From Klebsormidium nitens (lineage: Eukaryota; Plantae; Klebsormidiophyceae), in the NCBI GenBank assembly GCA_000708835.1, contig DF237141.1, forward strand, positions 87,665 to 151,664: a DNA stretch of 64,000 nt, read 5' to 3'. How positions within the stretch are numbered: the stretch's first letter is position 1; each line of letters opens with the position of its first letter. The notes under the pieces are model-generated. The model was not told where the DNA came from. It saw nothing but the letters and a program-made list of their open reading frames with translations, and did not search any database. Below are positions 1 to 64,000 of this stretch, in pieces. Position numbers and translations under genes: made by a program.

Positions 1-305
1 GCTTTTCAGGCAGTGAGCCCACGACCATTAGCGCTGGAACCTGCGGGTTAATAAAAGGGTTTAACGACGGACTTCAGGTTTTAGTGACAGGCTTTAGGCT
101 CGAGGTGTTGCACTGGGGTTGACTCTGAAATTGGGCTTCTTGGGGCAACCATAAGCGCCGGGACCTGCAGGTTAGTGAAAGGGTTTAGCAACAGGGTTTA
201 CTTTCAGTGACAAGGTTTAGGCTCCGGGGGCCTCATTGGGGTGTCTACCGGGACGGGCTTCTCGATGATTGAGCCCACGACCATGAGCGCCGGGACCTGC
301 GGGTT
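1..305 (-). repeat. Three ~125-bp tandem units, each an acceptor plus TRA1 exon start (VPALMVVGS)
   Basis: CAG acceptors (plus-strand ctg at 41-43, 165-167, 297-299), each followed on the - strand by GTY CCR GCG CTN ATG GTY. Confidence 0.85.
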
Positions 306-3300
306 AATACAGAAGTCTGCGGGTTTGCACGCCACCTCATTTGATGCCGTGACGCAAAGGACATGCGAGAAATCTTAGGTAAGGGGAGAGACAGACACCT
401 TGGGAGCAGACGACAAAGAAGGCTGAAAAAATCCTTGAGAACAATTTTTCTGTACCGCGGGAACAGTCACCTTGCGCTGCTTGCCCGACCTCAATGGGTC
501 CCTTTTGCACCAGGATCGCGAGCAGAACTCTCAGCCCCTGCTTGAGCTGAAGTCCGTGAGCGCTTTCTTATAAGCGTTAAAGCCCTTACCAAGATCGCTC
601 AGCGTGTCTTGATAACTCCTAAAGAACAACGTAAAAGGAGCGGACCATCTTACCCTTGCACTGTTGGGAGCAACCTCGATCGGCCCTTTTTCCACCAAGT
701 TCGCCAGCAGTACCTCCAGCCCCTGCTTGAGCCAGAGAACGTCTGCAAGCGCTTCAAGTTTTTGAGAAACTCTGAAGTGCGAAAAACACACACCCTGGCG
801 CTGTTTGGCGCGACCTCGATCGGCCCCTTCTCCACCAGAATAGCGAGCAGTATGTCCAGCCCCTGTTTGAGCCCGCATTGCGTCCGCTAAGGCTTTTCAG
901 AGACCCTTTAAACTTCTGAAAGACAAACACTTGAGACTCCAAAGTGCAACCGTACTCACCCTTGCGCTGTTTGGCGCAACCTCAATAAGCCCCTTCTCCA
1001 CCAGGATTGCAAGCAGAATGTCCAGCCCCTGCTTGGGCCAGAAGAAGTCTGCGGGCAATTCAAATTTCTGAGGAAGACCCTCGAACCTCTGAACTGCAAC
1101 GACACTCACCCTTGCACTGTTTGGCGCGACCTCGATCGGCCCCTTCTCCACCAGAATCGCCAGCAGAATGTCCAGCCCCTTGAGCCAGAAGACGTCCGCG
1201 AGCGTTTTCTTATATCCATGAAGGCCCTTTACAAGAGCGCTCAACATATTTTTGAAACTCCTAAAGAACAATTTGAGAGAATGGGACCATCTTACCCTTG
1301 CACTGTTGGGAGCGACCTCGATTGGCCCTTTCTCCACCAGGATCGCCAGCAGAATGTCCAGCCCCTGCTTGAGCCAGAAGACGTCCGCGAGCGCCTCCCA
1401 GTCTTGCTCGCTGATGATGTAGCACAGGCGCGCGAACAGCGTCTTGCCGATCGCCTCGTTGTACAGCGCAAAGAACTGCTGACGTAGGCCCGGCTCCGAG
1501 CAGCGCAGGCCGAGCATGAACGTGCGCTCCACCTTCTGGAAAACCTCCTGCGACTCGGTGGAAGAGGTGACGTCAGCCCTTGAGCCGTGACGTCAGCACG
1601 TGCGGATTACGGTTGGCAGCGAACTTCCGCCAGAGGCCCGGCTGCGAACAGCGCAGGCCGAGCGCGAACATGCGCTCCACCTACTGGAAGACTTCCTGCA
1701 AGGTCTAGTGAGTCAGGTGACGTCAGCATGTGAGGTCAGGGGACAAGAAGCACAAGTCAGCAAGTGCCCCAAAGGCGACGCCAAGAACCAAGCAAAAAGG
1801 ACCCAAGAAAACCGTTAAGGAAGCATGGGCGTGATCTCCAACTTCCAGACCAGCTGCAGGGACAAAGCGAAAGGATCATACGAAAGCACGTGATAACAAG
1901 GTGACGTCAGCAAGCCACAAAAAACACGAGTACGAATCAAGCACTCAAAAGCACGGGCCTTCGATCCTGCTTTTCGCGAACGACCTGCCAGTAAATGGAG
2001 GAAGGTGACATAAGCATGCCCAAACATGACGCCAGCGTGACAACAAGATTTACCGAGGATTGGATGAGAAGATCATCTGGCATTCTTCGCAGCCTTGGCG
2101 CATGGCAAACCCTGGTGTTCAGATTCCTTCTCGATTCACGGCTTGAACCAATAGAACACAGATTAAGAGGATCGCTAGAAAATCCATGATTCACCAGAAA
2201 TGTCACACGTAGCAGAGAGCAGATGAAAGTTGTAACGGACCTGGCGTAGACCCGGTGAGTGATGCGTCACGTCCGCGCACAACCGGTGCAGAAGCTTCAG
2301 CAACTTCCCGTCCCACTCTCCCGCCAGTTCCTTCCCAAAGTTCGCTTTATCCACTTGCGCCAACTTCGTCATCAGCATGAGCACGTCCGGCTGCTTCAGG
2401 TTCCCGGACGCTTTGCTGTCCGGCTTCTCAACCCACTCCTTAACCACGTCCAAAACCTCCATTCGGACGCTGGGATCCACCGCCGGTTCCGCGAGGATCG
2501 TGGGCAGCATTTGCAGGAACACGATTCGCTGCTGAGGGATCCCCAAAACCCGTAAAGACGCTAACCTCAGCGCGAGTTTCAGGTTACCCCAGGGGGGCAA
2601 TTCCCCGGCGGTTTTTGCGGCCTGCACCAGGTTATACTGGAGCACCGCCTGCGGGTCTTGGGGGTGGCTTGTTTTCGGGTTAGGCAAACCCGCGCCGTCG
2701 ATCATGAGCTTCAGGAAGCGCTGCCCGATGCGAACTAGGGCGGGGACGAACTTGTCCACGAACGACTTTTGCAGGGGGGAGAGGACCTTCAGGATTTGCA
2801 GCGAGACGGTGAGCCCCGTGTGCAGGGTTTTCAGCTCGACGGCCGGGTTAGTGGGCTGGTTAGACGCGTTGGTTAGCTGCTTGATCAGCATGTCTTCCAC
2901 TTTGGTGTGGATGGACTTCACTTCGGGGGGGAGGCTGAGCGTGTCCGTCGGATAGGCTTGGTAGACCATTTCCAGAACGGAGCACAGCTTAGCGGTCAGC
3001 TCGGAGTTGCGGATCGCGAAACACGGGTCCAGCACCTTGAAAAAAGGGGAGACCCAAAGATCAGCACTTGAAGAACTCAACTAGCAGATGTTTTGTTAGG
3101 GTAGTGACGAACGAGCACCTTGAGTGGAGGGGAGCAAACTCAAACTTCGGAGGTTTAAGTCTTCCGAAAGACACCGATGGTGAAATGATAAACAGGGGGC
3201 ACGCACCAGGAAGTATGTAACAGGAAAAGAAAGTGCTAGCCGTTGATCTTATTAAGCAAGTGATAGAGCCTCAGGCGAACGGATGAAGAAAGAGAGCTCA

Positions 3301-6300
3301 GATTGTGACCGTAACCCTTCTCCTCTTGCCGTGGCGTCTACATGTTGCTCGATAATATGCTCCAAGGAACCGACAAGCTGAGACCCTGACACTTTACACA
3401 AAGGACCCATCCTTTATAACTCAGGCAGAATCTGCTGGAACAGACTTAGACCAAGCCTCGACCCCTAATAGGATGCACACCTATGTAGTGTGCATCCTTC
3501 TGAGATACACAATCCTTGTAACCATCAAGCAGGTCATCTGAGCCGACATCTTAATCTAGCAACTATTGATATTGCCGGACTCGGGCAACTGGCACGCCTG
3601 CTCAGCACATCCAAGCTGGTGCATAGTTCAATCTGGTCGTTTTGGCAAATCCCAAACCCATATTTTAACCTGATCAGTCTTACTCTATCTGGGGTCTTCA
3701 GCCCTAAGCCTCATGTTACCTGGTGTATATGCATGTTGTCAGACTTGAGGAATTGGCGCACCTGCTTAGCAAGCACGACTTTGAGCACATCCAAGCCGGT
3801 GCTTATAATTACCCTGCCTAACCCAATCAAAACCCTTATGTGACTGGTTTCGATTGCTGCAACCGGTTACTCCTCCTAACGTCAAGTTCTAACCCACCTG
3901 TGTATCTGCATGTTGCCCAGTTTGGCGCGCCTGCTTGGCAAGAGCACGTCCAAGCCAGTAGTTAGAGTCCACTTGGAGACGAAAGGTAAAACCTCAGCCT
4001 TGCCATAACGTTTCCGCACGTTGCAGAACACCGTGACTCGAATGGTTTCTTACCTGGTGGATCTGCATGTTGCCAGACTTGAGGAACTGGCGCGCCTGTT
4101 TAGCGAGAACGACTTTGAGCACGTCCAGGCCGGTGTTGAGCGCGGGCGGGACCTCCAGGCCGCGGTTGTTGGGTGCGGACAGCAGCTTCTCCATGTAGTG
4201 GAACTTGACGGTTGCGGTTGGCCACAGGTCCAGGCACTGCAACAAGAACCGGATAGACAGATCTGGCATCCGCAGTGTTTATTGTTGGCATATTTACGAG
4301 CAAGGGTTTCTACTTGTTCGCCCTCTGCCTAGAGAATACAGCGGTAAATGATTCGGCCTTAGCGCATGGTGGTCAGAAGGTCAGAGCTGAAAGCCTGACG
4401 ACGCCGGTCAGCTTGTAAGCTCACGGTAGCAATCCCTTCGCGACTGTTCCGAACTCCTATTCTTGTCGGTTCGGCACTGTAAGATAAGAGAAGAGAGCGG
4501 GCTCGGATCCTGGTGAAGGGGAATATCCACCCCAGGTCGGAGAGACTCCAATTCTGCACGAATAAGCCGGAGACTCTTTGTCCCTCAACGTGTACCTGAC
4601 TTGGACAATAGTGGTTGGCCACAGATCTAGGCACTGCATCAGAAGGTGCAAATGTTTCCTTCATAACTGATAACCGACTTGAATCATTCGCAAGACGGAC
4701 ACAAGATTTCAGAGACCCGCGACGTGCTGTGGACGGGGATGGCAAAGCGCGGGTGGTAAAGGAATCGAGCCAAGGCTCGTTTCCGCAAGAGCTGACGTCT
4801 TAAGATTTGCATCCTTTCGGCGGGCACCAAGGTGACCAACGCTTGTGCCGCCTGCATTCAGATGCAGCTTGCAGCCATCTTGAGAAAGAAGCTTAAAGTC
4901 TGTCGACTGTAACATATAAATGAAGCCACCACTTCCCAATTCTGATCCCGAAACATGGTTGAGAATGAGTGGCCAGCGACAGTATGCGGACGAAGCAGGC
5001 TGGCACAGACTCTTAACCAATCAAGGGCTCCTCACCTGTCCCAACAGGTCCAACGAAGGCGTGTACATGACCTTGTGCTCCTTGTCCTTCGACGGCTCCG
5101 TCAAGAAGCAAACCCGCGTCAAGAAGCTGATGATCATCTCCTCCATCGCCGGACTCGGCCGGAACTCTTCCTCCGGCGGCCCGGTCGGGGTTCCCGCGTT
5201 TGCGCCGGGCGTCGGAGGGATCCCCCCGTCAACCGGTGTCGCGATCGGCGCCCCGCCCTCGCCCTTGAGCCGCTTGACACCATCCTTTTCGTCGTCGTCG
5301 AAGCCCGCGCCGGACGACGTCCGCTTGCTGCCGCTCCCCGGGTGGTCCACGTCCATGTCGAGGACCCCTTCCGGGTTCTGCGCGCCGCCCGGGATTTGCG
5401 GCGGGGGAGGCGGCGGGTTCTCCGCCTCCTCCATGCGGCGCTTCTCCCACTGGACCACCAGCCCCGCGAGGTCGATCGCGAGTTTGCGGCTCTCGGGGGG
5501 CGTGTTTTGGGGTAACCCTAACCGACTGAGGCTGTTAACCATCTGAGGGACGAACTGGGCTCTGCTCGGGTAGAACAAACTAGAGTGGCGAACTAGGAGC
5601 TGGAAGATGTGCGTCAGGTGCGCCATGGAGTGGCCCTCTTCTACCAGGACCTTTTTGGTGTACCGGATCCATATGGGCACCTTGGAGTCGCCCACTTTGA
5701 GGGGGAGCCGGACGGGGAGCGACGGGAGGAGCGTGTCAAGCGCCTGCTTGACGAGCTGGCGGGATTCGGGTTGGCACGTACGAAGCAGGGCGACGAAGAC
5801 CTGAGAGGCGAAAGAGAGGGAGTTCAGGTTCTGAGTGTGCCAATAAGAAGGAAAGTCGACTAAAGCAGGAGACATTCGATCCGAAGCCAATCAAAATTTG
5901 AGCTAGTCCTTCTCAAGAGTGCCTCCGACCATGAAAGGGGTACCTCAGACCGATGCACCTGACCAAGTTTACTCTTTTAGATCGCTTTCGGCCATTCGTT
6001 AAAACCGAAACAACCCTTGCTGGCGTCGTTAGACGACGGAATCTGGAGACCAAAAAGTCCAAGCCTTGGGACCCTGACAGCACAAGCGAACCTTCTTTCT
6101 TGCTTGACCACAATGGCAAACCTGTATACGTCAGGACACCGGGTACATGCCCGGAAGCTATACTTCTCTGGCGCTTGGTAAGATTCCGTCTGCTAGCTTT
6201 CACAACAAAAGCTCTCCAAAACTCTCTTGCTCCAAACCTCGGACCCTGAACGTCGCGTCTCCGCAACACGGAAGCCAATTAGGACCCCTGTGCCCGGTTG

Positions 6301-9300: not shown

Positions 9301-12300
9301 TGGCGGCGGCCGGCGGGAGCAGGTGGAATAGCTCGAGCACGGCTGCGGACAGAAACGGACAGGATGTAGGTTTGCAGCTTTTGGTGCGGACAGGGAACGG
9401 ACGGATTTGCGTTGCAGCTTTTGATGCGGACAGGGTACGGACGAAGTGTGCATTTGCACATATCGTTGCGGAGAGGGAACGGAGGGAAGCTGCCTTGGCA
9501 ATGTCTGATGCGGACAGGAACGGACGGAGTTTGTTGCAGCTCTTGGTGCGAACAAGAACAGTCGGAATTTTGGCTTGCAGCTTTTGGGCGGCCAAACGGG
9601 TATTGAAATTGAAAAAGGCAAAGAAACTGAGGCGCACCCGAAGCGTTCTAGAGGGCGGATTCGATCAAGGAAGCTGTCAAAAAGTGAATGGTCCAACGGA
9701 CAATCCCTTGGTGCTTCCCATGAAAATTGGCTTCCAAGGTATCTGACAGAGAAAAGTGGACTGACAGGCAATAAATCGGGCACCCGCAAGCAGAACCACA
9801 GACAGGAAGCTAGCTCCGAGCAAAAAAAAGGAACATTCCAGTCAGGGAGAAAGCTTTGACAAGACAACCAGTTATTCGTCTGTTCTTCGGCTTTAACACA
9901 AACTCAAGATCGGGCGAACAACAGAAGCAAGAAATCGAGTCATATGGAAAAACGGGCATGGACATTATTGACACAAGAAGCAAAAAGCCCTCACCGGCGG
10001 CAATCTTGGGCTCGTCCCCGTTCTTCCACCCCTTCCCCGTTGTCGCGATCAGCTTATCCAGCTCCAGCCACTTCTTCAGATGCTCCATCAGCTTCTCCCC
10101 GAGTGTCACGTTGAACCAGTTCGCTAGCAGCTCCAGCAACCGGGCCAGGCCTTGGAGCAGGGGCATGTTCAGGTTCTTGTAATGCGCCAAGTTGACCAGA
10201 ATTGGTCGCAGGCTGGTTTGGAGGAGCTCTTTCGGCATCTTCTGGTCGCGGATAACCTGGCAAGGTCAAGGGTGAAGGTTAGAATCCCGATGTCCCAGGC
10301 TCTAGTGGACAGTCGGTATGTAACAGTGCGCCAGGTTAACCAGTATCGGTCGTAACTGAAGGAGTTTGGAGGAGTTACTTCGGCACCTTCTGGGCTCAAT
10401 AACTTGGCGGGATACGTAATAACTTTCCAAATGTTGAGATGTGGCCATACTTTCGACTTTCAAGTTTATTGTTCGCTGCTCATAATGCGCCAGATTAATC
10501 GAAACAGGGTTCGTTGCTCAAAGCTCGTAGACTTACATATTTACCTCTGCATAAGCATAGACTTCCAACATGTGTACCTGTCGGAGACCCTCCTTGGCAA
10601 CTACGAACGAGTGTTCGGCGAGTGAGCCGCTGGCAAAACCTTCACCAATCTTCACTCAGTATCACCTACAAGTCTTCTTATTAGAACAACAAGATAAGTC
10701 CAGCTTCTGCCAGTTCTCACCTGTCGCAGCCCCTCCTTGGCGACGGCGACGATGTCCTGGTTCTGGCAGGTGAGCCGCTTGAAGAACATGCCGATGATAC
10801 GCGTGCGCAGCTCCGTGTGCTGCGCGTGCTTCAGGTCCGCCCACGCCATCGCGGTGCACAGCAGCTCGATGCACGCCGTGCGCAGCTTCGTCAGCGTCGC
10901 CGTCGTCTTGGGATTCAAGTACTTCCCGTGCATCGCCTAAAAGAAAGTCAAGTGAATTTGGGCTTCTTTCCTTTCATCGATCGTACAAGTGAGATCTCCC
11001 GTGCATCGCCTGCATCAAATGAGAGCTCAGATCAAGAATGCACGTCAAGAAGCATATTAACCAAAGCTGCACAGCTGCCCCTGCTCCGCTCTCAGCCGCT
11101 CCTCTTCCTCGACACGCCTGAGCGTCGCTGCTCTACTCGCTGCTCCCCTAGGCCAGACCCTCCTACCCGACGGTTTGCGCTCAACCTCGTCCGAGCACAC
11201 GCAAACAGAGGACGGACTAAGAATCCTCAGAAGCTTCATTATCTTCCTCTCGTTCTCACCCGCTCGTCCGTCTCGACGTTCCTAAATACCCTGTCCAACA
11301 TCAGTTCTCCCCATGTAACCCTTCTCTTGGACGGCTTTCGGCTTACTTACATTCACCAACATGAGGAAAAAGTGGTGTAGTCTTGCCCCGTTCTCACCTG
11401 CTCGTCCGTCTCGGCAATACCCAGCGCCTCCTGCAGGATCATGAGCAGCTCCGGCGTGACCTTCAGCAGCGGCGGCCGCAGCGCGAGGCAGAAGTTGAGC
11501 GCCATTACTGTGCCCACCTGGCAGACACGTCGGGTGACGTCAGCAAGTCCTTAAAAGACGCAGGCAAGGTGGACACTTGACCTCGATTAGACTGGCATGA
11601 CGTCCCAAATAATCGCATGTCGCGTCCACATATTGTAAGAGATCCACGTAGCTTGACGTGATGGGGCGCCTCCTTGCCTCATAAACGGCAAACCGATGCA
11701 GACTGCCGAAGGGATTGAGCTCCATAATAAAGGAGAAGTACCAGCGATTCGTGAATCAAGCATCAGGAGTCAGCATATAAGCTTGTAACCCGTATTTAAA
11801 ACATCGCAGGCGTAGGAGAGAAAATCAAACAAGTGTTGGTTCTTCCCGTCGTTCCTAGATTGCTCATTCTGAAGCCAAGTGCCTTCCTTGCAACCAGCTG
11901 GAGGAACGTAAAAAGACGAACGAGTAAAAGAGTACAAGTAGCCCTTGAGAAGGAGGGAAGGAATGCTCGCCTGCGCCTCAGCGTGCTTGGCGCGCAGCGG
12001 CCGCCCGACGAGCATGTTGAGCAGCGGCCCGTGCAGCGGCTCCAACAGTTCGGACACTTCCGTGCCCCATCGCTTCGCCAGGAACCCCAGGCAAGTTTGG
12101 ACGTTCTTCCGGACGTTCTGACTCGCCGCCGGGTTGAAGAGCTCCGCGGCTAACACTTCGACGACGCCCTGGAAGCTCTGCTTGTCTTGGGCGTCGGAAG
12201 TGGAGGCGTCAACGGCAGGGTTGACCACCCTGTGAAAAAGAGGTTAGGAGGGGTTAGGGGTTGTGGTTATGTGGATTTAGGGTTTTGAAGTGCCGGGAAT

Positions 12301-15300
12301 TGGGGGTTGAGGAGCTCCGGGGTAAGAACCTCAAAGAGGCTTTAAAAGCTCTGCTTGTCCTGGGCGTCGGAAGTGGACGCAGGGCTACCCACCCTGTGAA
12401 ACAGAGATTATATCGGGTTAGGAAAGATGGGTTTAGACGATTTGAACGAGCTTTTGGACGTTCTTCCGGACGTTCTGGCTTGCGGCTGGGTTGAAGAGCT
12501 CCGCGGTAGAACCTTCGACGACGCCCTGGAAGCTCTTCTTGTCTTGGGCGTCGGAGGTGGAGGCATCGACTGCGGGATTGACAACCCTGTAAGAAGAAGG
12601 TCGAAAGTGTCGGGGATAGAGTGTTTACAAAACGAAACATTTGAATCTCTAGGCTGGTAAGAGCTCCGTCAGTCTGAAAGCAGATTTTATCCTGAGCATC
12701 GGATTTGGCAGCGCAAACAGAGGGGCAACTGCCCAATGCAGAATTGCGTTCCAATCATCGTACAATAGGCTATTGGGGACTTTCGGGAAAGAACTCGATG
12801 GCGAGGTATCTCTTATTCACTTCTATCGGCTTGAACGGAGCTTTCCGGCCAGACGCAATGGAGTAACAGCAGTGTCCAGCGTCTTTCGCGATCGCCAACC
12901 AAACGATAAGTCTTCAGCGGCCGCCTAGGGTGAGGGCGAGAAGCACGAGCACGCCCCCACCTGAGGACCTGCGTGAGCACGAGGCTGGTCTCCTCCTGCT
13001 CCTTGTTCGCAGTCACCGGCAGCTGCTTGAGCACGTACAGCAGCGCGCGCACCGTCTTCACCTGGAACTGGCACAGCGTGTCCACCGGGGCCTTGCCCAC
13101 CAGCGCGCCGATGCCCTGTACGATAAGCTTTCACGTGTTCCGCAAGTTTCCATGATCCTTCAAGGGTTTTGCGGTGTTCGGCGTCTCTGTAGACAGATTA
13201 TAGGGGCAGGTCGGCCTGCCACACCGTGTTCACCGGCCCCTTGACCACCAAAGCGCATAGCTTCTAAAACTTTCAGCACGGAAGGTTCCTTGATTGCCAA
13301 ATATCTTGATTTGACCACGACAAAGACACACAATGTCCACAGGATGCTTGCTCATCAGCAAACTGGATATCCTGTATGCAGGAGACCTTTTATTTGCAGG
13401 CTCCAGAGTTCCAATCCTCAACTAAAGCTGAGCAAAGATATCCGAGAACTGGGCTTTACACCCTTCTCTTGTAAGCGAACTTGAAACGGAACGCTCGATA
13501 GGCTACGCAGATGATGTTAACATGTCGTCAGCGTCGTTCTCCTAGGGGAAAATCAACAAACATTAAGCCAGCAAGTAGCTGAGAAAAGGAACGGTTATGA
13601 TAGACGCACCTGCACGCCGCCCATCTGCGACTGCCACGTGCCCCCGTAGCAGCAGTGCAGGAGCCGCGGGATGAGGTGCTCGAACACCGGGATCTTGACG
13701 GTGGCCGGGGGCGACACAACCGGGTTGACCGACGGGCTAGAAACGATCATGGGAGTACTCGGGAGAGACGCCTTCTGGGGACTGATGCCGCTGCGCTTCA
13801 CCTTGGCCAGCAGGAGGAGCGTCTCGCAGAAGACGTGCAGGCCTTGCAGGGCGGCCTACGCAAGGGGGGAGAGAGAAGAGGGACGTCAGCGGATCGTTTA
13901 ATGGCGTCAGCACTTTGGTTTTGGACTTTTTAGGAGCTAAGCTGATGCCGCTGTGTTTCATTTTGGGCCAGCAGCACGAGCGTCTCGCAGAACACGTGCA
14001 GGCCTTGCAGGGCGGCCTGCGTGAGAAGGGGAATGGAGCCTGACGTCAGCGTTAGTTCAACGGCGTCAGGACTTTGAAATTGGTCTGCGGGGACGTCAAG
14101 CTGGTTCTGTGAGTTCACCTTGGCCAGCAGCAAGAGCGCTTCACAAAAGACGTGCAGGCCTTGCAGGGCGGCCTGTGCAAAGCAGGGAGGGAAGAGTGAC
14201 TTCAGCGAACAGTATGATAACGCTAGAGTTTTGAAAGCGGTACGTGAAGACGTCTAGTCAAACTTCCTGCGTTCAGCACTGGCCAGCAGGAGGAGCGCTT
14301 TGCAGAAGACGTGCAGGCCTTGCAGGCGGCCTGAAAAGGACGACAAAGGGATGGATTCAGCAAAAGAACGGTGATATTCAGGAGACGACTGCAATTTTCA
14401 GCAGACCGATGGCGAGGGCGTTATATTGGCAAGAAGGGAGCTGGGGCAAAAAAGACACGATTGATGCGTTGAATGGACACCGGTCATTTGCGCGTGCATT
14501 TGCCGGCCCCTTTCGCTACAGCTCTCAAGAGGCTCGCAAAGTTTGAAGGGACATAGCGCTGTCAAGGTTAGTGTGCTACTACCCGCAGGTACGAAGGCTA
14601 TTGGGACATCAGCAAACACACGTCCCCGTCCCTTCCACGGCTGTTACCAGAAACTTGCTTTGCACGCGCGAAGATCCATAAACCCGCTGTTTCAAAGATC
14701 ATAGAAGCTACACTTTAAAATCGCCCACCTTGGCCTGCTCCCGGTTCTCGTCCGCCAGCACTGCCACGAGCGCATCCAAGAAAAGTACCGGGTCTAGTTC
14801 CTTCAGATTCGCCGACGCCATGATACTCTGCGCCGCGGGCCCCAGCCCCTCCTGCTTCGCGCCCCTCTTTCCCGGCGGGGGGGCCGCAGAGGGCATCTCC
14901 CTAGGGGCGCCCCGCCCCCCTGGAGGAGAAGGGGGCTCCGCGGTGAAGAGCATCGCGAAGTGGCGGCAGAGATTGGCGACGAACTCGTCGTCCGGATCGG
15001 AGAGATCGGGTTCTGCGCTTGCGGCAATGACGGCCATCAGGAGCTGCTTGAAGACGGTGCGCTCCGCGAGCAGCTGCGTCTTCGTCTTGACGCCCAAGTC
15101 CACCTGGAGTAAGAAAGAGTTTTAGTTTGTCCGGATAACCTTTGTGGGTTTTGTCGGCCCCCTAACTAACGTCCTTCTTCTCCTTTCTCCTTGGTTACTC
15201 TGCTCCTGAATTCAGAGCTCATGACGACGGTGCACTCAGCGAGCAGCTTGGTCTTGACGCCCAGATCCACCTAGGGCACAAAAACAGTTGTGCACATTCT

Positions 15301-25733: not shown

Positions 25734-27502
25734 TGCTAAATTTTGGTGGCACCCCCCGAGGAGTCACCGATGTACATTGGATCAAGGGCGTTGAAATGCA
25801 CGGGCAGCGAATTTCTTAGCAAGCTGATGTGACAATGGACTGCGCAATCCGTGTGCCCCTCTTTGCATACCTATCCAAAGGGAAGAGAAGCGTTAAGAAA
25901 TTGAAGAATCAATCTGATGACACGAGAGTCGTCCAAACACCTCAGAAACCATTCAGTGTGCACGCTGAGGGAGCGCCAAGCTCTGGATAGTTTCACTTTC
26001 AGCCATTGCCTTTCACCAAATAGTACTTGTCGGAACTTCAGAGAAGCTCAACCGTCTGCCAATTGGAGCTCGCTCAGACGTCTGAGTCAGCGTCCTCTCC
26101 GAAGAGTGTGCGCTCGAGCTCCTGAGTCAGGCCCTCTCAGGAAGGCTTTTAATGCTGTCCAGCTTGTCCAGCTCCAACTGCAACTTTTCTGCCAGGCCAG
26201 TTGGTCTGAAACCTGTAGCTATAAAAAGAAGTCCTGCCCCCTCATTTATCATTCGCTCAACACCATCTTTTGCCGTAGCATCTCACAATCACAATGTCAA
26301 CGTAGAATACTTCATCATTTCAGCATTCTGCAGAATTTGCAGCAGTGTTTACCACGAACTTTTGAGGTTGCCGGTCGCCCAGACGATCGGTCCCCGATCA
26401 GTCGGTTGAGAGCAAGTGACGGCCGGTTTGCCAGGGCCGGCTCTCTGGATTTCGGCCGGTTGGATTAGATCCGAGCGACATTGCGGCGGTCAGTTTTGCG
26501 GCCATTTCCGTCCAATCTGTAACATTTTGCAGGGCTCGATGGTCTCTCGAACTCTATAAGCTTCCAAAAGCTACAATACAGGAAGAAACCCAGGATAGAG
26601 ACTCGAACACTCAATCAAGCGGTTCTAAAACACTGTATTTTGTTGAAATTGAGTTGATAGTTGCTCGTAACGCAACTGACTGGACTGAATTTACCCGGCT
26701 CCTAATTGAACCGACAGCCTCTGTTTGAGCCGGCTTCTCAACCGGCCTCCGGCCGGCCACCTTCGTCTCGGTCGGCTGCCGCCAATTTCAGTCGGTTGCA
26801 ATACCACTGCAAGTCGGTTCGTGGGAAACACTGATTTGCAGTGGCAAGGTTTGCAGCAGGGACCAAGGGTCTAACCAAAATTGTGGCCCGTAGAGGAGAC
26901 GTAAAACCTAACCGGCACATTTTGCCCCAGGTTTTGGTGACAGCGGCATGACCGGGGTCAAGCCACGGCAAATTGCTGCCAGCTAGGATCGTCTTTTGCC
27001 GTCGATTTATGTAGACGTGTATACATCGACCATAGATATCAAGAGTTAGATTATCCTCTACAGCTACGTTTCTGTGCTTCTCTCTTGCAGACGGCGACCG
27101 CAGCCATCCAACGGCTGACTTTAAGCCGTCCAGATGAAGCATTTGGATATTTCAACGTCCCCGATCATGCAGCTTATTCTCTACGGTCGCTCGTAATCTT
27201 CCTTAGGGCAACCCCTTCATGCCCAGCTTCCTTCTCTCCGAGTCCAAGTCAGAAAGTCGTTGCTAAACCACCATGAGGAATCCCTTTTCCATCTTAGGAC
27301 TTGGATGAGGGACGCAGGTACGTTGGAAGAGTTGGAAGAGTTCTCGTTGATCTCCAGCTGTCTTCTGAGTTGTGATTTTTTGTTGCAAGAAATTTCGTGC
27401 TGCGTCTTAGTTCAAACGCTCAGCAGCTTATATGAAGATGGTCTTTGTCAAGCATTGAAGTCGAAAAAGAGCAGCAAACAAGAGTTTGGTAAGTCCTGCA
27501 AC

Positions 27503-51700: not shown

Positions 51701-54700
51701 ACTCTTCTCACACGGAAGTCGACAGCAACCTATAGAAGTCCGATTCATTTTAAACCCTGGGGAACCGTACAGAACATGTGGGGTTCCCTTGAGCTTGTGG
51801 ACTGTGATTACGAGGGTTACCTTGACCCCGTCAAAAGCGGTTCGGCCCGTCCTCTCCTCGAGCTTCTCCAGCGTGAGTCGACCCGTGTACTTGGCGATCG
51901 CCTGCGCTTGCTCGCCGTTGTCCACGCCCAGACCGTCCAAGACCTGCGGAAAGATTTTTCGGGTTAAGACCGACGTCCGGACTTTGCAATTTGAAGTTGG
52001 GGTTTGAAACTGGGTTAGATATAATGGGGTTGGGGTTTATTCTGCGTTTATTGCCACGCCAAGACAGTCCAGCATCCGAGGGTTAAAAGTATGGCTATAC
52101 GGGTAAGTGAGGTTCTGAGTTGGCTATCCAAAGTTAGGGGTTGAATTATGGGTCTGAGGTTAGGTTTCCGGGCAGGTTTGAAGCCACACAAGCAAGTAGA
52201 ATACTCGCATAAAAAACCATTGAAGCAGATGGAAACCGTGCTTACCTTAAGCTTGCGCAGCGAGAACAGGGTATACCCCCGGTATTCAGCGTCCGCACAG
52301 ACCGGGTTTCCGGACAGGTCCAGAATGATGAGCTTGGGAAGGTCTCGTAAAAGCAGCACTTGCTTGATCTCAGCCACCCGGTTGTTGCCGCAGTACAGCT
52401 CCATGAGTGACGTCAGACCCGCCAGAGGTTGCAAAGTGGTGATCTCATTGTCCTGAAGAAGGGGCGTAGAGGGTAAAGTTTTGACTGTTGGCCTACTGAG
52501 TAGAAGATTTTGGTCGACTCAGCTTCGAGGCAAGGAAACTGTCCCTAAAGCCAAAAGGTATCGGGATTGAAGTCCGGAATTAACTTTGTGAAGAGACGGC
52601 CGATTGAAGCCAAAAAAACTTTGCTCAAACCCGTGAACACAAGCCACGCCTGGATTGTTTAACGTGAACCTTCTGGCTCTTATTGGGCTCTAGCTTGATT
52701 GCCTTGGTCCGATTCGTCCACAGTAACGCGGTATCCACCAACGGCTTGAACAACTGCTTCGAATAATATTCTACTATAATCTAACGCAGACTTTCGAAGA
52801 AAGCTTCACAACTCATTTGACGCCTCGCGTTTATTTTTGTAACTACGAAGGCCGTATAAGCCCCTGCATCGCCGCTCGGACAGAAAAGAGAGATTGCAAG
52901 CTAATTCCACTGGCCTTCTTGGAAAAAAGAACCCCAAAATCTGAAAAGAAGAATTCGACACAAGATCCTCACCTCGATTGACAGCTGCGAGAGCCCCGTC
53001 AGCGTTCTGAGTTTCTCGCAGGACGCGACGCGGTTCTTTCCTAGCTCCAGCTTTCGCAACCCGGTCAGGTTCTCCAGGCCGTCGATCTGCAAAGAAGCAA
53101 GGGACACTTGCATCGAACGGGTGCGAATCCTTCTGTCGGTTGCTGTTCATTTTTCAGGGATAGGGATTTGTTGGTACTTACGAAAGCCTGGTATCAAGTC
53201 ACGGCGACCGTAACAAGAGCATCGTTGAAAGAACCCCGGTCCTGCCTGCTAACAGCTCTTTCTGCATTGAGAAGGCCACTACTTGTTCCACAAAAGAATG
53301 GCTGGCTCTTATGCACAATTTTCTGCACGCCAGTCTTGGACTAGCGCACGCCCGATATCAGATTAAGAGCCTATGATTGTTTCGATGAGGGCTTGACACT
53401 CGACGAGTAGAGCCCCTCCTATCTCTGCCAAGAAACCAGCCAGCCCTTTATATATGAGCTTCTTCTTACCCTGACGATCCTGTTCTCCTCCAGGTTCAGA
53501 TCCTCCAAGAGGACCAGTGACGTCAGCACGTCCACGTCAGCGAGCTCGTTGTCGCGCAGGCTGAGCCGGCGCAGCTGCGTCAGCGACTCCAGGCCCTGCA
53601 GATTCGAGGGACCTCTTGTTAGACAACGAGAGGCTACTACATCAGAGACAGCTGCGCATAAGCTCTCAGGCTCTTCTTCTTGAAAACGGGTATCCAAGAA
53701 CCAACTACTGAGTAAACTTGCTCCGGTCAGACGAAAGGATTCTACGACATCTCTTTGCTTGGGGGGCCCGTGCGCCGAAGATACGTGGGCATTTTCTGCA
53801 GCATGTCAGCATGCTTGCGTCAGTAAGATCATTAGAAAAGTACGGCAGCAGAACCGACTTAATACGTTGAACAGGTAACAACGTCCCGAACACAAAAAGC
53901 ACACGAGGATTGATTCCCAAGTAGGAAGCTTGCCCTGAACAAATTATGAGACCCACCTGCAACCCCCTGAGCCGTCGATGCTCCAACGCGAGCTCCAAAA
54001 CCTCGCCAAACCCCCCGTCCCGAGCCCCCGCGGCCGGCCCCGCCGCGTCCGCCTCTGTCAACCTTTCCGCACCAGACCCAACAAACCCCCCAAATCCCCC
54101 GTGCAGCCTCCCTTCCCTAGGCCAATCCTCCGAGCTTCTCCGCTCTCCCCCGTATGTTTCTCCAGGCAAATCTACCCCCCTTCCGGGGGCCGAACTCGTC
54201 CTGGGTTGCTGGCGCCCAGCCAAAGCCTCACGTATTGTGCCCGAAGTTACGCAGAGCAATGCCTTGGGGGAGTGTACTGAGTGCCCGGTTATGGGCTTCC
54301 CGTCTAGAGCCGTGAGGTGCTTCAGTTTGCGAAGGACGGTTTCTTGGTACCCCCACGAGTCGGTGACCGGGTTGTTCCGCAGGGAAAGGGAGGTGAGGGA
54401 CGGAACCTGAACGGAAAGAGAGATGAGTGGCAATTAGAGTCCTTCAGTCGATCGACAAAACACAGAAAAGGGTAATCGAGTCAAACTGGCGTCCGCATAA
54501 ATAGATGCGGAGGTGAGAAACACGTTACAATGATTGAGGTGCGAAGCACGACTCCTCAAATACCGGCAACAATCTGTCGAAAGCTATCCAATAAAAGCAT
54601 ATTAGAAGGGGCTAAGAGGGAATAATCGTAAGGAATCATACCGAAAGCAAATTACAATAGGATGAGGTTTTTCAAGTTGGCAAGCGCTCCATAAATGGCA

Positions 54701-57700
54701 AGCGTTCCTGCCACGACCTCTTTACACTAGAATCTCTGAGCTTCTTCTTAAAAATTTGACCTCCTTTCACCAGCTGTAGGTTGTCAACGGCAGGCCTTGA
54801 GAGCATCAAAATCAGAAGAAGAAGAACGAAAGTAGCAAGCGAAAAATTTGCGGGAAACTTGAGTCCCTCACGCTTCGCTTAAGCGTGCTGACGTCGTCCA
54901 ACTTGTAGATCTGATTGGACGCCAGGTCCAGCGTCCGCAACGCGTGCAACCCCTTCAACCCGTCGATCCTTTTCACATAGTTATAGCTAACGTCCAGCTT
55001 TTCGAGCTGGGTTAACCCGTCTAACCCCTCCAGCTTTTGTATGCTATTAAACGACAGAACCAACACCCGCAGGTTGACGAAGGCCGACAGCGCTTCGATC
55101 TTTCGAATGGAATTGTTGTGTAGATTGAGCCACGTGACGGCCCACGGGGCCGCCACGTTGCACTGCTTCGTCAGCGCGTCCTCCGTCAGGACCAAAGTGC
55201 GCGCGCGTGACGTCAGCAGCGGCGCCATGTTGAGCACGGTCAGATAGGCCCCGTCCGTGCAGCTCTCCCCGTTCCTGGCCAATGCGCGGCTGCCACGTGG
55301 CGACCGGACGTCCGCCAGGAAATGTGCGAGCGGCCGGCAGATCGCTCGGACGTCCGGATCGACCCGGTCCAAACCGTCCGAATGTATCGCGGCGATCTTT
55401 GCAGCTTCGCGATCGGACACAAACGGCCTTCCGGCCTTAACCACGGCTTGACCCAAAACGCCCATCCCCCGGTCAACCGTATACTCAAACTCGACGACGT
55501 ACTCGGGGAGAACTAACGCAGTGTCGAATACCGCCCACGTGCACTGTTTTTCGTCGCTTGGGTCAGGAACGTACACTGAGTCAGCCCCTGGGTAGTCTAA
55601 CCCGCTCACTAACCCATTTGATAATCGGTCCTTAAACCGCTCGAGATTGACCGACCGGGGCGCCCCGGAGCTCGGCCGCAGCGCTGTGTTCGAAACCGCC
55701 CCACTCTGCACCTTTCCGTTTACTTGGTTACCTTTCGGGTTACCGCCTAACCCACCTTCTTCCCCCGCCGCCTGCGTCTTCCCCAGAAACACCTTCGAGA
55801 CGAGCAGCCTCCCCGTCAAACCCGCCAGCGCGCGCTGGAGCCCCTGCTTCATTTTTAGGTTATCGGCTGACCCCCTGACGTCACCCCGGCCGTCGCTGAC
55901 GTCAGCGCGCGTGCACGCCTGCAGGCGCGGCAGGTCCGCGAGCCCCAGGCTGTTGGTTAGCGTAACCGCCTCGGTGTCAAACCCGTCTTCGGCGATGAGC
56001 TGAAGGTGCTCGGGGTTCGAAAACTCGTTCCCGGTAAAAAGGTACTCGAGCGCACGCTTGTAGTTTGGGTCGCTCGTATCGACCTGTATTCAAGATGGAA
56101 AAGCGGGGGTAGGAGGCTTTCTTACACATCCCCGGTTCATAGAATGGTGGAACGGGTTTGGGCGTTAAGGGCTGAAGTGGTTAAGAAATTGGGGGCTACT
56201 GAGTTGGCTTGCTGGGAGCAGGAAAGGCATACCTGCGTCAAGAGTCTGTCGGACTTTGGGCATTCTCAAAACGGAGCGACTGTGGGAGATTGCTCCAGTT
56301 TTAAAGAAAAATGACAGGACAAGCCTTTGGCGCGCCCTTAATGGTCAAAGAAGCTTTCGGCACGGGTTCCACGGAACATTAGGCATTATCTTCCTAAGCT
56401 CAACTTTCGGAAGACTCTTTTCCCAGAGCAAGCCGGAACGGGCCGCCTTGCTTACAGGCTGAAATCTCACCAATTGTTGCCCTCACCTTCTCTTCCAACG
56501 TCGCTTCGAAGCGGTTCCTGAGCGACCGGTTGTGGACCCGCGTAACGCCGGTCACTCGCACGCCCGTGATGCCGTATCGAGAGTAGTCGGCGGGAAAGAA
56601 CCGGGAGGTGACGAGGTCGGAACAGGAGGAGAACCTGAACCATGCGGACGCGTCAGTCTCAGGAGCCCAGACGGACATTCGAGGAAGTCGAGCAGTGCAG
56701 GCACGATCCAACGTGGGCAGCGGATGTACTTGGATAGGGGGAAAACGGACCGAGAGATTGCTTAAAGTGAGTAATGCGCAAGTTGCGTTCCCAAGAACTA
56801 GATCAGGCACTTTCCACAAGCGCTTCTATGGAAGCGGGTAAGGCCTAGACGTGACTTCAAAAAGCAGAAAGCAGACGGTGCAAGCTTGAGTATCTTCTTC
56901 ATGAACTTGTTTATCCCAACGGGGAGTGCACGCTAGCTAGCAACGTGCGCTACCGTTGCCGACGCTTCCTATCCATCTTATTCCCTTGCTCTGATTTTAC
57001 GTCCTTCCTTTCCACGTTTGCTGAACACATTCGAACTTTACAAGGCTCCAATCCTTCCAATATCAAAATCAACCAACGGCAAGAATGGATCCTCACCACA
57101 GGTCGGACGGCTTCCCGTCCTCCAGCCGCGTGTTGCCCCCCGTCTCTAGTTCCAATCTGAGCCGCCGCACTGCCACGTCACTCAGCTCGTACGCTTCCTT
57201 CTTGCACCGCTCAAACGTCCGCTCGATGTCGTCGACTTTGGCGACCAGTATATTGACGGCTGAGGTGGCCGCTTGGTGCTTTTTGAAACGTGGACTGTCC
57301 GGGGCCTTGTCCGAAGGAGCTGTCTCCATTTCTTGCTCGACGTCCTTTTGGAGGCGGGTCAGGGCGGCCAGCACCGCCTGCAAAACGGGGCCTCTTGGTG
57401 TGTTCAAGTGCTTACGGAAACTCTTTCCTGACCATCGTTTTTCTCACTACTGTAGCCTCTCTCACTAGGTGCAATCCTTGCATGAAAAGTCGTTCCCAAA
57501 TTTTGATGTCCGCCAGCAGTCTAAAATATTCTTAAACAACCTGGATTTCGCGGACATATCCTTTGAGCACAGCTTGTGGGGGGAGTCGAAAGTGAACCCA
57601 ACTACCTTTTCGGTTGGCCAGAGCAGGACCCCTTTTGTGCGGCTGGCCAATCGGCGCCGTCATGCCCTCGGCCGAAGACATCATTCAAATAGAAACATGA

Positions 57701-58904
57701 TAAGAAGAGAGACAGGAAGGAGCACAGGAACAAGAACGCAAACTGGTTTACCTGCGCTTGCCCGACCTGCGCCGCCTTCCCCTCGGCCGCGAGCTTCACC
57801 CCGTTGCTCGTCTTGCGCTGCAGTGTCTTGATTTTCATGTTATAGTACATTCGCTTCTTCATGTACGTCGCCTCGGCCGCGCCCTTCGCGTCGTCGCTCA
57901 GCTCGAGCGCGTCCAAAACCCTTAAACCTCCCATCGCAAATAACGCGTAAGTCTGGTAGTTGCACAGCTGAGAGACAGGCGATTGGCCCCAGTGGGGGTC
58001 CGACAGGTAAAGCTCCCTCAGCTTGGGGAGCCGTGCCAAGTGCGCAATCTCCTTGAACGACCCGACCTTGGTATCAGCGAGGTTAAGCGTTTCTAGCTCT
58101 TTGTTAATCGAAAACACACCGCCAACGCTTGAGATTGGGTTTCGTGCCAGGTTGAGGTTGCGCAACCTGGTTAAGTCCTCTAAGCCTTCAATGCGCTCGA
58201 TCTTGTTGTTCGCGAGCCAAAGCGACTCAAGCGCTGTCAAGTGGGCCAGGTTCTCGATCCTTTCAATCTGGTTGCTGTGCAGAAACAGTTCCCGTAGTCT
58301 TAGACACTTTCCGAGCCCGTCGATGCGCTCGATTTTGTTTTCGCATAGCCAGAGCGACTCCAAATGGACGCAACTCTCGAGGCCCTCTATGCTGTGGAAG
58401 GTCTGTTGCATGAGCGCGAGGGACTTTAGGGCGGGGAAGAGCTGGAGGCAGCGGATCCGGGGAAAGTTGAACATGAACATTTCGATTCGGTGGATGGTCT
58501 CCGCGTTGAGGCGCAGCGTCTCGTCGGAGACATCGTTGAACTCGCAGAGCTCCTCAAGCACTGTCAGAAAAGACGAAACGTATTTCAGTATGGCTTTCGA
58601 GAGTTGAAGGTTTACGGGACTTTGGAGACTCTCCCAGGTTTGAACGTCCCATTGTCACCGCTTCTTCCAAAGCGGCTTCGACTAAGGTTGGTGGGCTGCA
58701 ATTTTCAAAAAGGCCCGTCACTTGCTCTCGTCAATTTAGCAATTGATGCATGCCTCTCGGAAGATACAAGGAAGGACAAGTATCGTCGACTTAATCCCGC
58801 TCACCAGTCTTCTCTTGCTGCGACAGGCTCTGAAGCAACAACTTCTGTCTTTGGACCACCGCCAGCGACCCCACCAAAGGGCCGTCCCCATCTTCGACAG
58901 CCAT
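48775..58904 (-). CDS. LRRC9: Leucine-rich repeat-containing protein 9 (ciliary LRR protein with central ART/PARP-like region), ~1640 aa
   Basis: Exons 58904-58805, 58560-57752, 57377-57097, 56634-56487, 56083-54872, 54406-53957, 53595-53470, 53086-52973, 52452-52246, 51943-51821, 51421-51300, 50982-50748, 50307-50038, 49506-48775; total 4929 nt, in frame. SDS22-like LRRs plus LRRC9 signatures LEELCEFN, LCNYQTY, MKKRMYYNMKIKTLQR, RVHNRSLRNRFE, LEYLF, LVLPEYVVEFEY. Confidence 0.88.
50393..50455 (-). repeat. Acceptor-side echo of LRRC9 exon 50307-50038
   Basis: Reads GL(H)KLSRLEK(R)VLDRNKI on the - strand versus the live GLDKLSRLEKLVLDRNKI. Confidence 0.82.
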
Positions 58905-61677: not shown

Positions 61678-64000
61678 GTATCAAGCTCCGCAGCTTTATC
61701 AGGGCGGATTCATACCAGAACTTGAAACATATTTGTATCTATCGTCCAGTTGAAACGGCTCAGAAAAATGTCTCCGAGACCGGAAACACTTCGGTCGTCT
61801 GGAAAGAGAAGACGGGGAGAAGACGTTGAAGAAGACGGTTTGATTCTATCCTTCTCAGGCACGGCCCGCGCTGAAGATGGTCGCCCGGTTCGTTGCCGAC
61901 TCCGGGAACTACGAATACGCGTTCAACTGGGTGTTCCGCCAGGACGGCCTCAGGCTTATCACTGTCAACGTTCAAAATTTGAACGTCCGGAATCCTGCAA
62001 ATGAAGGCAGTCGTGAGGTGGGTCTAGAGGACGCCTAAGTTACTACTACGATTCTGAAGTTTGAATTCGAAGTGCCTTATTGACGAGAGGAGCGGGTCTT
62101 TATCCAGAGAAAAGCCACTTGATATGCAGTCTACGTTGCAAGAAACAGTACCTGTCCGTAGTCATACTTGCATCGCTCCTTGAGAACAGCGAAGAAGGAT
62201 GGGCCTGAGAGAACCGCGTCAAAGCGAGCGGGGATGGATCATTAAGCAACTTGCCGAAGTCTCTTCGTTCGATTGTCGAAAGAACACATCACCTGGCCTG
62301 CCCTTCCCAAACATCTTCGTCCCTCCTTTTCTCCAGCTCTGGAGCCAACAACAGTGCAGCAGTGCGGAAGGTTTGAGACGTTTGTTGAACGAAGCCTCGG
62401 CCGCCTTTAACCACGACCATTTTTTTGACTTCGCCTAGACCTCCAATGCTAAATGTTCCAAATAAAACAACTGCACTGAACAGAGTTCAACTAACAATTT
62501 TCATCCTTCCCTTCCCTCAGCTCTGAAGCCAACTTGTTGGACACCAGTAAAGGCACCGCATAAGCGCATTCTGGAACGTTTGAACGTTTGTTTGCGACAA
62601 CGTGGTGGTTGTTAACCGCGACCACTTTTTCAGCTTCCGCCTCCACATGGTATCGCTGCACCAAGAAATACCTTCTACAGACAATCAAAGAGTCCCTCAT
62701 TCTCCGCAGCTCTGCGGCGAACATCAGCGACAGTACCGCGGAGGCGCAGTTTGTTACTAACGTGGTTGCCGTTCATCACGACCACTTCTTCAACTTCCGC
62801 CTCGACATGGACATGGACGGCCAGAACAACTCGTACGTCATCAAGCAGCTGCAGCGCGCGTATAACACCAACGGCACGAAGCCGCGCCAAAGCTACTGGA
62901 CGGTGATTGGTAGGGAGTGGTCTTTTGCTGTCAAGTTCTTCTGGGTTGGAATGCGCTGTCACCGCTGGTCCTGACCTTCCGCGTGATCACTCCGCTGCAT
63001 CAAGATGCTTGTAATTTTGGGCATCTTGGTGGCTGCTGCCATCTCTCTCTTGCATCAAACTGCTTGTGACGCAGAGAGAGTCCGGCGCAGGTTGTTTGAT
63101 AGTCCGTTCTGACCAGATTTTGTCTGAAGAATGTCGATGGCCCTTGTAGATTATCGTCCTTTTCTATAGCCCAACTGGTCGCGTCAGTTTCTTATCGCCG
63201 TGGAATTAATTTTCATCGGTTCTGGCTTCAACGTAAGCCAATTTTGTAAGTCCTTCTTTTTGTCCTGGGCCTTCTTAGCAATGCCGTTTCTTACCCCCGG
63301 CAGGTCACCAAGTACAACAGCAGCGAGAAGTTTGCCTCGGGGGTGTTCACCAACCAGGCCACGGGAGACCAGACGCTGCTCAACTGGTGATCGGAAATGA
63401 CTTCATCACAAACACGGACATTGTGCTGTGGTACACCATGCAGATGCATCATATCCCGACTCAGGTGACGTCACGACTCTGTTACGTGTGCTTCCTGGTC
63501 TGTTGCCGCGTTGAACATTTTCGGAGCCCCAAAGACAGCTGCCTCCGCGTTGTTCGAAAGGATGAATTGATCTTGCAGGTTGGATGAAAGCTTTCGCGCG
63601 ATTTTGAGACGAGTATGTTGAGACCAGTGTGATTTGAAAGATTAGAGATTGAGACTCTGACGTCTCATTACTAATCTAAATGAGCTTTGTCTTCCAGATG
63701 TCACTTCTTGCTGGCTAAAGTCTCCAGCGACTGGGACATTTGTTGCACTACCGGTTCTCGCTTCCGCTACTGTGACGCCACTTCAAGCGGTGTGAATCGG
63801 GCATCCCACAAAAACTGAAAGCAATTTGCAATCTTCTTTGCACCAGGATCAATTCCCTGTGATGCCAACGGAGACGATGGGCTTCCACCTGCACAGCCCG
63901 CCAACTTTTTCGAGAGGAACCCTGTGCTGGCGGCGAACCCTTTCTCGGCGGACTATGGTTTTATGAGCAGCAGCGATGTCCCACGTGGCGCAAGAGTACT
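61678..64000 (+). pseudogene. Copper amine oxidase (CuAO) pseudogene, C-terminal exons recognisable, runs off right edge
   Basis: Exons 61859-62017 (MVARFVADSGNYEYAFNWVFRQDG, TPQ consensus N-Y-E), 62710-62902 (VAVHHDHFFNFRLDMDMDG), 63304-63464 (VTKYN...TDIVLWYTMQMHHIPTQ), 63847- (DQFPVMPT...PANFFERNPVL). Frameshifts near 61980 (+1), 63387 (-1) and 63892 (+2). Upstream exons are only vestigial (QLYQGGFIPEL near 61690). Confidence 0.8.
62330..62650 (+). repeat. Two acceptor-side echoes of CuAO exon 62710-62902
   Basis: cag|CTCTGGAGCCAAC...CCACGACCATTTTTTTGACTTCGCCTAGAC (62334-62440) and cag|CTCTGAAGCCAAC...CGCGACCACTTTTTCAGCTTCCGCCTCCACATGG (62518-62650). Confidence 0.85.

Follow-up and report, generated by a model that had tools for sequence, protein, structure and literature searches.

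Introns of a Klebsormidium TRRAP gene are stacked with copies of their own exon edges, a minority of which may have been coding until recently in a diverged gene copy

Why should the introns of a gene hold partial copies of the edges of its own exons, and how could some of these copies differ from the exon almost only at silent positions? Both questions arise in a stretch of 64,000 nucleotides from the streptophyte-type alga Klebsormidium nitens (contig DF237141.1, positions 87,665 to 151,664; hereafter the window), which carries at 1–24684, on the minus strand, the N-terminal ~2530 codons of a TRRAP/Tra1 gene that runs past the window start. We call an ‘echo’ an intronic partial copy of an exon end together with its adjoining splice site and a stub of intron. 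The explanation at which we arrive has two layers, the decay of tandem duplicates and a minority of formerly coding exon ends, and as a whole we hold it tentatively, at slightly less than an even chance. That the echoes are non-coding products of junction-spanning tandem duplication and unequal exchange we state with high confidence; that about 6% of them were exon ends translated until very recently in a diverged homologous gene copy is reached by elimination and carries moderate confidence.

We analysed the TRRAP locus in detail, and the local repeats of a neighbouring SWAP/Surp-like gene without codon counts. In a tblastn search, a 3886-residue homologue (P0003) matches the window in 27 exon high-scoring segment pairs (HSPs) that form a colinear chain, corresponding to the N-terminal two thirds of the protein in 24.7 kb; the nearest named relatives are plant TRRAPs. 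Comparing the window with itself by blastn gave 46 direct HSPs, of which all but one lie within 3 kb, a level of local repetition far above chance, so that the dispersed copies that would mark an introner-like or transposon origin are not seen. Repeat finding together with Tandem Repeats Finder resolved families with start-to-start spacings of 121–188 nt or multiples thereof, and searching each TRRAP exon against the gene recovered 31–32 intronic exon-end copies. Every echo family derives from its own neighbouring exon, and the array units, each an exon end with a donor or acceptor and an intron stub, are repeated head to tail. Echoes in upstream introns consist of the acceptor and the exon 5′ end, those in downstream introns of the exon 3′ end and the donor, a polarity that the preliminary description of this stretch had proposed and that is consistent in 113 of the 115 echoes of the window and three relatives (four lineages). 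One contig from an independent k-mer assembly of DNA (Logan) covers 19000–24900, that is, 5.9 kb with three arrays, with 0 differences, and short contigs from a second library cover several arrays. With high confidence, the arrays supply much of the intron length. That echoes occur at all six loci of the window held for TRRAP; the other loci show fewer local repeats, at least one of which is possibly a repeat within a leucine-rich-repeat (LRR) protein.

Are these arrays a peculiarity of one genome? Orthologous TRRAP loci from four lineages, R0 to R3, were taken from metagenomes (JGI) and SRA assemblies (Logan), and their TRRAP fragments contain the Pfam domains Tra1_ring, Tra1_central and FAT. 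In its large exon, R0 (L008) shares 92% nucleotide identity with the window. Third codon positions differ by 36% between the window and R1 (L006 and L001 combined), to which R2 (L003) is close; R3 (L010), found in R1's samples, is 14% apart from R1 at third positions. Arrays of this kind are present in all four, some at shared junctions and some at different ones, which makes the phenomenon a property of the clade. Exon boundaries are the same in R0, R1 and R3 and coincide with the ends of the P0003 HSPs, and unit boundaries are common to all copies and to R0. Between the window and R0, introns are mostly unalignable despite the 92% identical exons; intron 1547–2239, for instance, measures 693 nt in the window versus 262 nt in R0 (L008 1366–1627). 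R1 (L001/L006) and R3 (L009/L010), ~14% apart at third positions, co-occur in two JGI metagenome samples and are each identical between both, so diverged relatives share a habitat. Scans of metagenome contigs found nothing.

In the assembled RNA contigs, splicing takes place solely at the copy contiguous with the exon, which among donors is the most upstream and among acceptors the most downstream, although rare use of a pseudo-site would escape such contigs. The decoy splice sites in the echoes look intact; none of the echoes occurs in the assembled mRNAs of 4+2 runs, and no cryptic splice sites at unit boundaries could be fitted that would allow an echo to replace the live end in the mRNA.

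The second question is posed by the donor-side array at 463–1205 (minus strand, from repeats and alignment), in which the 3′ end of exon 1296–1546 (about 1296–1400) and its GT donor recur five times, the largest number of copies per junction that had been claimed. The live exon is placed by RNA contigs, frame and translation, with contigs of 4 runs joining 1546|2240 and using a donor at 1296. Counting differences from it by codon position (p1/p2/p3) over 26 codons gives 0/0/5 for the copy at 1110–1204, 0/2/9 for 960–1056, 0/0/11 for 794–873, 2/1/5 for 654–755 and 4/2/9 for 469–563. Echo 794–873 thus encodes the same 26 residues as 1296–1373 with 11 silent and 0 replacement changes (11:0), and 1110–1204 shows 5:0 plus a 3-nt deletion. 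The three copies nearest the exon, all of the clean type, differ among themselves by 0/0/5, 0/2/7 and 0/2/9, and their intron parts are only weakly alignable. Unit 549–755 is a 207-nt copy of live unit 1191–1397; a supposed ‘640-bp nested duplication’ was set aside, since only this unit is clear and 469–563 has no specific kinship to 1110–1204. Separately, a frame of 211 codons (897–1532, minus) is open from the live exon across two complete echo units whose lengths, 186 and 150 nt, are divisible by 3, and would encode three near-identical copies of LDILLAILVEKGPIEVAPNSAR.

A comparable array, seen from repeats and RNA, lies at 23725–24159 (minus), where acceptor-side echoes of exon 23401–23639 recur with a period of 184 nt: 23725–23833 (0/0/8, or 8:0, with a +1 insertion), 23909–24017 (1/1/10, or 11:1, with a +1 insertion) and 24091–24159 (3/1/7). 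Between its 184-nt units at 23541–24023 the intron part is ~30% diverged by a by-eye estimate, and exon positions 1 and 2 show 0 changes in 70 sites. On the acceptor side of the exon ending near 12231 (12304–12588, minus) stand the decayed echo 12304–12380 (8/0/8) and the clean-type echo 12453–12588 (2/2/13). Hand counts of the preliminary description recurred in our alignments at these junctions and in a further echo at 21033–21136 (11:2), with the exception of 12453–12588, where a claimed 11:1 beside a scrambled patch was recounted as 11:4.

How unusual such counts are depends on what decay would produce. Were an echo non-coding from the moment it arose, changes at positions 1 and 2 would be confined to the echo, and position 3 would change both in the echo and, through silent substitutions, in the live exon, so that at most about 47% of differences should fall at position 3. 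Pooled counts fit this neutral split in R1 (134/108/205) and do not depart clearly from it in R3 (91/69/161, P = 0.12) or, marginally, in R0 (38/38/85, P = 0.07), whereas the window has a third-position excess (81/52/191, P = 6e-6) and its echo–echo pairs show 2.4 times more differences at position 3. Echoes within an array share history, and the pooled P values are therefore overstated. The excess is concentrated in the arrays 463–1205, 23725–24159 and 12453–12588; other echoes, such as 21518–21597 (7/5/6), 19085–19132 (2/6/3) and 1621–1698 (5/3/5), look neutral. Testing each of the 115 echoes against the most generous neutral split, we found seven with p < 0.025 (at most 2.9 expected) and three with p < 0.0025 (at most 0.3 expected). 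Counts were left unpolarised because R1 is too distant as an outgroup: the strong bias towards G or C at third positions (GC3) yields parallel W>S changes (A or T to G or C), which makes polarisation unreliable.

The seven clean echoes also differ in spectrum. Ordinary echoes drift towards A/T (350 S>W versus 97 W>S third-position differences), which is the decay of relaxed GC3-rich sequence, whereas third-position differences in the clean echoes are symmetric (22 S>W versus 26 W>S), as between two coding sequences at codon-usage equilibrium, and these echoes have hence hardly decayed. They differ from the live end at 17–42% of third positions, and in their intron stubs divergence is far greater than in their exon parts. 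The preliminary description had each echo spending a long time as selected coding sequence. With R1 and R3 pooled counts at the neutral expectation, and with replacements and A/T-ward decay in most window echoes, that generalisation fails; a coding past survives for roughly 6% of echoes (7/115), which are too clean for junk at birth. Its own caveat, that the listed cases might be a selected tail, was half right: they are indeed the cleanest, and the tail is heavier than neutral decay permits.

Orthologous echoes, recognised by colinear and alignable flanks, reveal how echoes evolve where they sit. One such echo differs between R1 and R2 at 14 of 84 sites, spread 4/5/5 by projected codon position as read from the sequences; one species has gained a stop in it, and the other seven replacements. 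Seven orthologous echoes differ between R1 and R3 by 12/19/17 (the four best covered by 6/10/8, with flanks differing by 14.7%), giving 16/24/22 for both comparisons together. This even spread shows that echoes are under no protein-level selection in place and that third positions have no intrinsically higher mutability. Between R1 and R3, divergence at live third positions is 12–15%, close to the 14.7% of echo flanks, and silent sites of live exons thus evolve at about the neutral rate.

Several candidate sources of the silent excess were tried and rejected. Mutation bias or base composition, CpG included, falls short, as class rates at positions 1 and 2 predict 38.6 echo-side third-position changes and 89 are seen; a mutation bias towards third positions as such is contradicted by the even change of orthologous echoes. 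Protein selection in place fails on the spreads of 4/5/5 and 12/19/17, on stops and on frameshifts. Gene conversion within arrays combined with a selective sieve was simulated under conveyor, fully connected, hub-and-spoke and identity-dependent models, with replacements in the live copy lethal. Ratios of position-3 to position-1/2 differences reached 1.1–1.6, clean echoes (at least 5 silent changes) appeared in no more than 0.2% of samples, never with as many as 8 silent changes. The related idea of a filtering hub, by which the live copy passes only silent variants among echoes, allows a ratio of up to 3 in algebra and again 1.1–1.6 in simulation. Finally, a second allele or homeolog at least 80% alike was found in neither DNA nor RNA.

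What else could account for the clean echoes? The plainest proposal is that all echoes are within-genome tandem duplicates, non-coding from birth, with gene conversion limited to the exon part and the silent-only cases an eye-picked neutral tail. The counts of R1 and R3 agree with the neutral split and those of R0 depart from it only marginally; most window echoes carry replacement changes; all window copies of one array share a lineage-specific codon; a jump in R1–R2 divergence begins at a unit boundary; and the overstatement of pooled P values works in the same direction. We nevertheless consider it rather unlikely, given the excess of three and seven outliers over their neutral expectations, the symmetric spectrum of the clean echoes against A/T-ward decay elsewhere, the silent-only differences between echoes themselves (0/0/5 and 0/2/9) and the failure of conversion with a sieve to produce clean copies. 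Alternatively, some echoes could be translated in place, now or recently, as cassette exons or alternative splice ends under protein selection. The frame open through two echo units at 897–1532, the intact-looking decoy splice sites and the in-frame one-codon deletion of one echo would suit such a role. Orthologous echoes, however, change evenly over codon positions and gain stops, +1 frameshifts interrupt two of the cleanest echoes, which have silent changes only on either side of them, a related R0 echo is out of frame, about a third of unit spacings are divisible by 3, which is the chance share, and assembled mRNAs lack echoes altogether. This reading, which had also been raised as long-lived alternative splice ends, is accordingly disfavoured and, in our judgement, improbable.

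Another possibility is that live exon ends near active splice sites gain silent changes many times faster than other coding sequence, young echoes being frozen snapshots. In the live end 1296–1347, 11 of the 17 third positions within the final 51 nt differ from R0, compared with about 12% in the core of the exon, the same end is raised between R1 and R2 (8/29 versus about 5%), the ends of the large exon are deep between the window and R0, and a symmetric spectrum is what live-side changes would leave. As a general rule, however, the idea does not hold: across 1398 codons of R1 and R3, third-position divergence is 11.8% in 510 end codons versus 15.4% in 888 core codons, and echo-covered exon parts between the window and R1 show neither raised divergence (36.6% versus 35.6% elsewhere) nor lower GC3 (85.9% versus 82.1%). 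By hand comparison, moreover, echoes 960–1056 and 794–873 have private, non-nested silent changes, and so are not snapshots of one changing sequence; we regard this alternative as very improbable. The allele-like divergence of units had also prompted the suspicion that arrays are assembly artefacts from stacked haplotypes or strains. No support for it was found, and it is refuted, to a probability we treat as negligible, by the exact match of the independent contig and the pieces confirmed in the second library. No variant contigs 80–99% alike occur in DNA or RNA, leaving no second allele or homeolog available for mis-stacking, and arrays recur in separately assembled relatives (JGI, Logan).

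We therefore return to the two-layer explanation. In its first layer, units of about 120–190 bp across an exon–intron junction multiply by tandem duplication and unequal exchange. Because the unit carries the splice site, only the exon-contiguous copy (the most upstream donor or most downstream acceptor) gives a correct mRNA; the remaining copies sit in the intron, are skipped and decay neutrally, and arrays expand, contract and turn over throughout the lineages of this algal clade. With decay, mutation bias, selection in place and simple conversion eliminated, the clean echoes appear to have been coding until recently in a separate gene lineage, and the second layer would supply them from a gene copy 17–42% diverged from the present live end at third positions. 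The simplest route may be that two diverged alleles or sibling lineages, their arrays misaligned, undergo unequal homologous recombination or break repair. Homologous chromosomes would differ in array length and have unalignable introns, so no special machinery would be needed; the partner's live exon end could be added as a new echo next to the resident one, or, equivalently, a new live end could displace the old, and an acquired echo would afterwards decay as any other.

Several observations at exon ends are in keeping with this second layer. At 1296–1400 the window and R0 have different unit types in the live position; the window live unit has its own intron stub, and R0 stubs resemble window echo stubs (a weak resemblance, with local alignment p < 0.005 for one pair and 0.08 for another). 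At both ends of the 794-nt exon the window is as far from R0 as it is from R1, and in the core the window and R0 are nearly identical. Overall, silent window–R0 divergence amounts to 0–4 per 20 codons in cores and is as deep as window–R1 at all four exon ends examined. Deep ends with shallow cores are a hint of what core-confined exchange or exon-end replacement would leave.

A number of points weigh against such an acquisition. The deep-end pattern comes from two exons in a single species pair and does not appear between R1 and R3. No donor lineage was found among those sampled: echoes are no closer than the live exon to the live ends of R0, R1 and R2. In one array, each of the six window copies has GAG at a codon where relatives have GAA, which points to a within-lineage origin or concerted evolution. 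A partner about 20–40% diverged at third positions and with unalignable introns would be extreme for one species, and DNA and RNA both present a single haplotype. In addition, the outlier statistics come from few arrays whose echoes are not independent, polarisation suffers from the distance of R1, and the simulations cover only a simple family of models. The model of displaced or acquired alleles, put forward in the preliminary description for echoes in general, is hence compatible with the data and the best remaining explanation for the clean subset, yet unproven; no echo groups with a sampled foreign lineage, and the donor, if any, is unsampled. Going one step further, the clean echoes might have been left by recombination that brought together deeply diverged haplotypes or sibling lineages in an alga not known to have sex, a reading we consider possible and on balance doubtful. 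Exchange would then start only in conserved exon and resolve unequally in unalignable, array-filled introns, with the live end of the partner remaining as an intronic copy, and exon cores would be homogenised across lineages while exon ends and introns remain diverged.

Further echoes extend the inventory across the gene, all on the minus strand. At 14–309, repeats reveal acceptor-side echoes of the next exon beyond the window start, with copies ending near 53, 180 and 309; an RNA contig matches 222–294 with 7 mismatches in 73 and then departs from the window. Exon 1296–1546 also has an acceptor-side echo, 1621–1698, which looks neutral by repeats and codon counts. Exon 4052–4236, defined by RNA, has donor-side echoes at 3569–3943 by repeats (3896–3943, 3717–3801 with 1/2/7, and 3569–3606). 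Repeats likewise place three acceptor-side echoes of the exon starting near 13855 at 13942–14330 (period 156–161 nt) and three of exon 17845–17126 at 17935–18283. The RNA-defined exon 20777–20982 is flanked by a donor-side echo at 20602–20708, from repeats, and by a four-step acceptor-side ladder at 21033–21597, from repeats and RNA (21033–21136, 21233–21284, 21370–21427 and 21518–21597), in which decay grows with distance, as had been reported. The intron hosting this ladder (20983–21711, minus) is spliced as GC-AG instead of GT-AG, with borders ...GAGAG|GCAAGG and ...GTGCAG|GGTGCT.

RNA contigs from several public runs fix the boundaries of 11 of the 27 TRRAP exons on the minus strand: 24492–24629, 23401–23639, 22662–22976, 22081–22207, 21712–21797, 20777–20982, 19855–20184, 5036–5803, 4052–4236, 2240–3033 and 1296–1546. 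Within the introns, a palindrome-like motif, (G)TGACGTCA(G/C), recurs ~20–40 nt upstream of acceptors and also within echo units (1561–1600, 1711–1727, 1895–1912, 13875–13890 and 14036–14050); it includes a branch-point-like CTGAC and, upstream of exon 1546, is kept between the window and R0. Two short-period tandem repeats, 46195–46298 (33 nt, 3.2 copies, 92% matches) and 9344–9591 (~42 nt, 6 copies, abutting an exon start), differ in kind from exon-edge echoes. Head to head with TRRAP lies a gene resembling SWAP/Surp splicing regulators (27260–31361, plus; Pfam Surp and SWAP1_C), which has two weaker local repeats, 28926/29050 and 29696/29840; R1 carries the same neighbour (L006 69–2108), so synteny is conserved. 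Two LRR genes lie on the minus strand at 53705–58655. The repeat 58185/58317 (132 nt apart, differences 0/0/5) falls within a 1050-nt open frame of an LRR gene and, possibly together with 50249/50392, may be a protein repeat in the LRR frame instead of an intronic echo. Rfam and tRNA scans found nothing.

How does this compare with known systems? In intron 7 of human F7, a minisatellite begins with a 37-bp unit that spans the exon 7–intron boundary, so that the authentic donor is followed by a row of silent pseudo-donors and the donor lying farthest upstream is the one used (Borensztajn et al. 2006, PMC1557585). The tandem direct repeats of the window likewise begin with a boundary-spanning unit, and donor-side arrays use solely the exon-contiguous site in assembled RNA contigs. 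Unlike the near-identical 37-bp copies of F7, however, the units here span 120–190 bp, carry 50–110 nt of exon and are 70–95% alike with a subset of coding-type divergence, and the arrays occur at donors and acceptors, at many junctions of one gene and throughout a clade. New introns can also arise when an exonic segment containing AGGT is duplicated in tandem or segmentally (Hellsten et al. 2011, PMC3265369; potato RdRp, PMC4974935). As there, duplication of splice signals is tolerated, splicing removes the extra copy and exon-derived sequence ends up in an intron; here, in contrast, the introns are old, with positions common to relatives, the duplications lengthen them instead of founding new ones, and unit boundaries showed no AG|GT requirement.

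More generally, small tandem families are homogenised by unequal crossing-over and gene conversion, a process known as concerted evolution. The echo arrays resemble such families in expanding and contracting, with unit content partly species-specific and unit boundaries shared. The GAG codon common to all six window copies of its array may be a derived state of this kind; most silent states form a mosaic across species. The arrays are unlike such families in that one member, the live exon end, is under protein selection, and simple conversion misses the silent-only copies. With mutually exclusive exons they have in common tandem copies of coding sequence with splice sites; unlike these or cassette exons, echoes are partial, have one splice site, in many cases carry frameshifts or stops, and stay outside mRNA contigs. 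Single junction-spanning repeats and duplication-made introns are thus known, and full-text literature yielded no description of a whole clade with introns largely built from stacked edges of their own exons. Within the literature searched, arrays at both splice sites and many junctions per gene across a clade are new, and the subclass with coding-type divergence is likewise without counterpart.

For this algal clade, the arrays represent a distinct route of intron growth and a natural experiment in splice-site choice, in which rows of intact-looking decoy acceptors and donors are ignored. They are also a trap for gene prediction and for homology search, because tblastn matches echoes. Should the clean echoes stem from exchange among diverged haplotypes, genome sequence would allow a direct test for cryptic sex or hybridisation in this algal group, and the introns of the clade would hold a readable, datable stack of past genetic exchanges.

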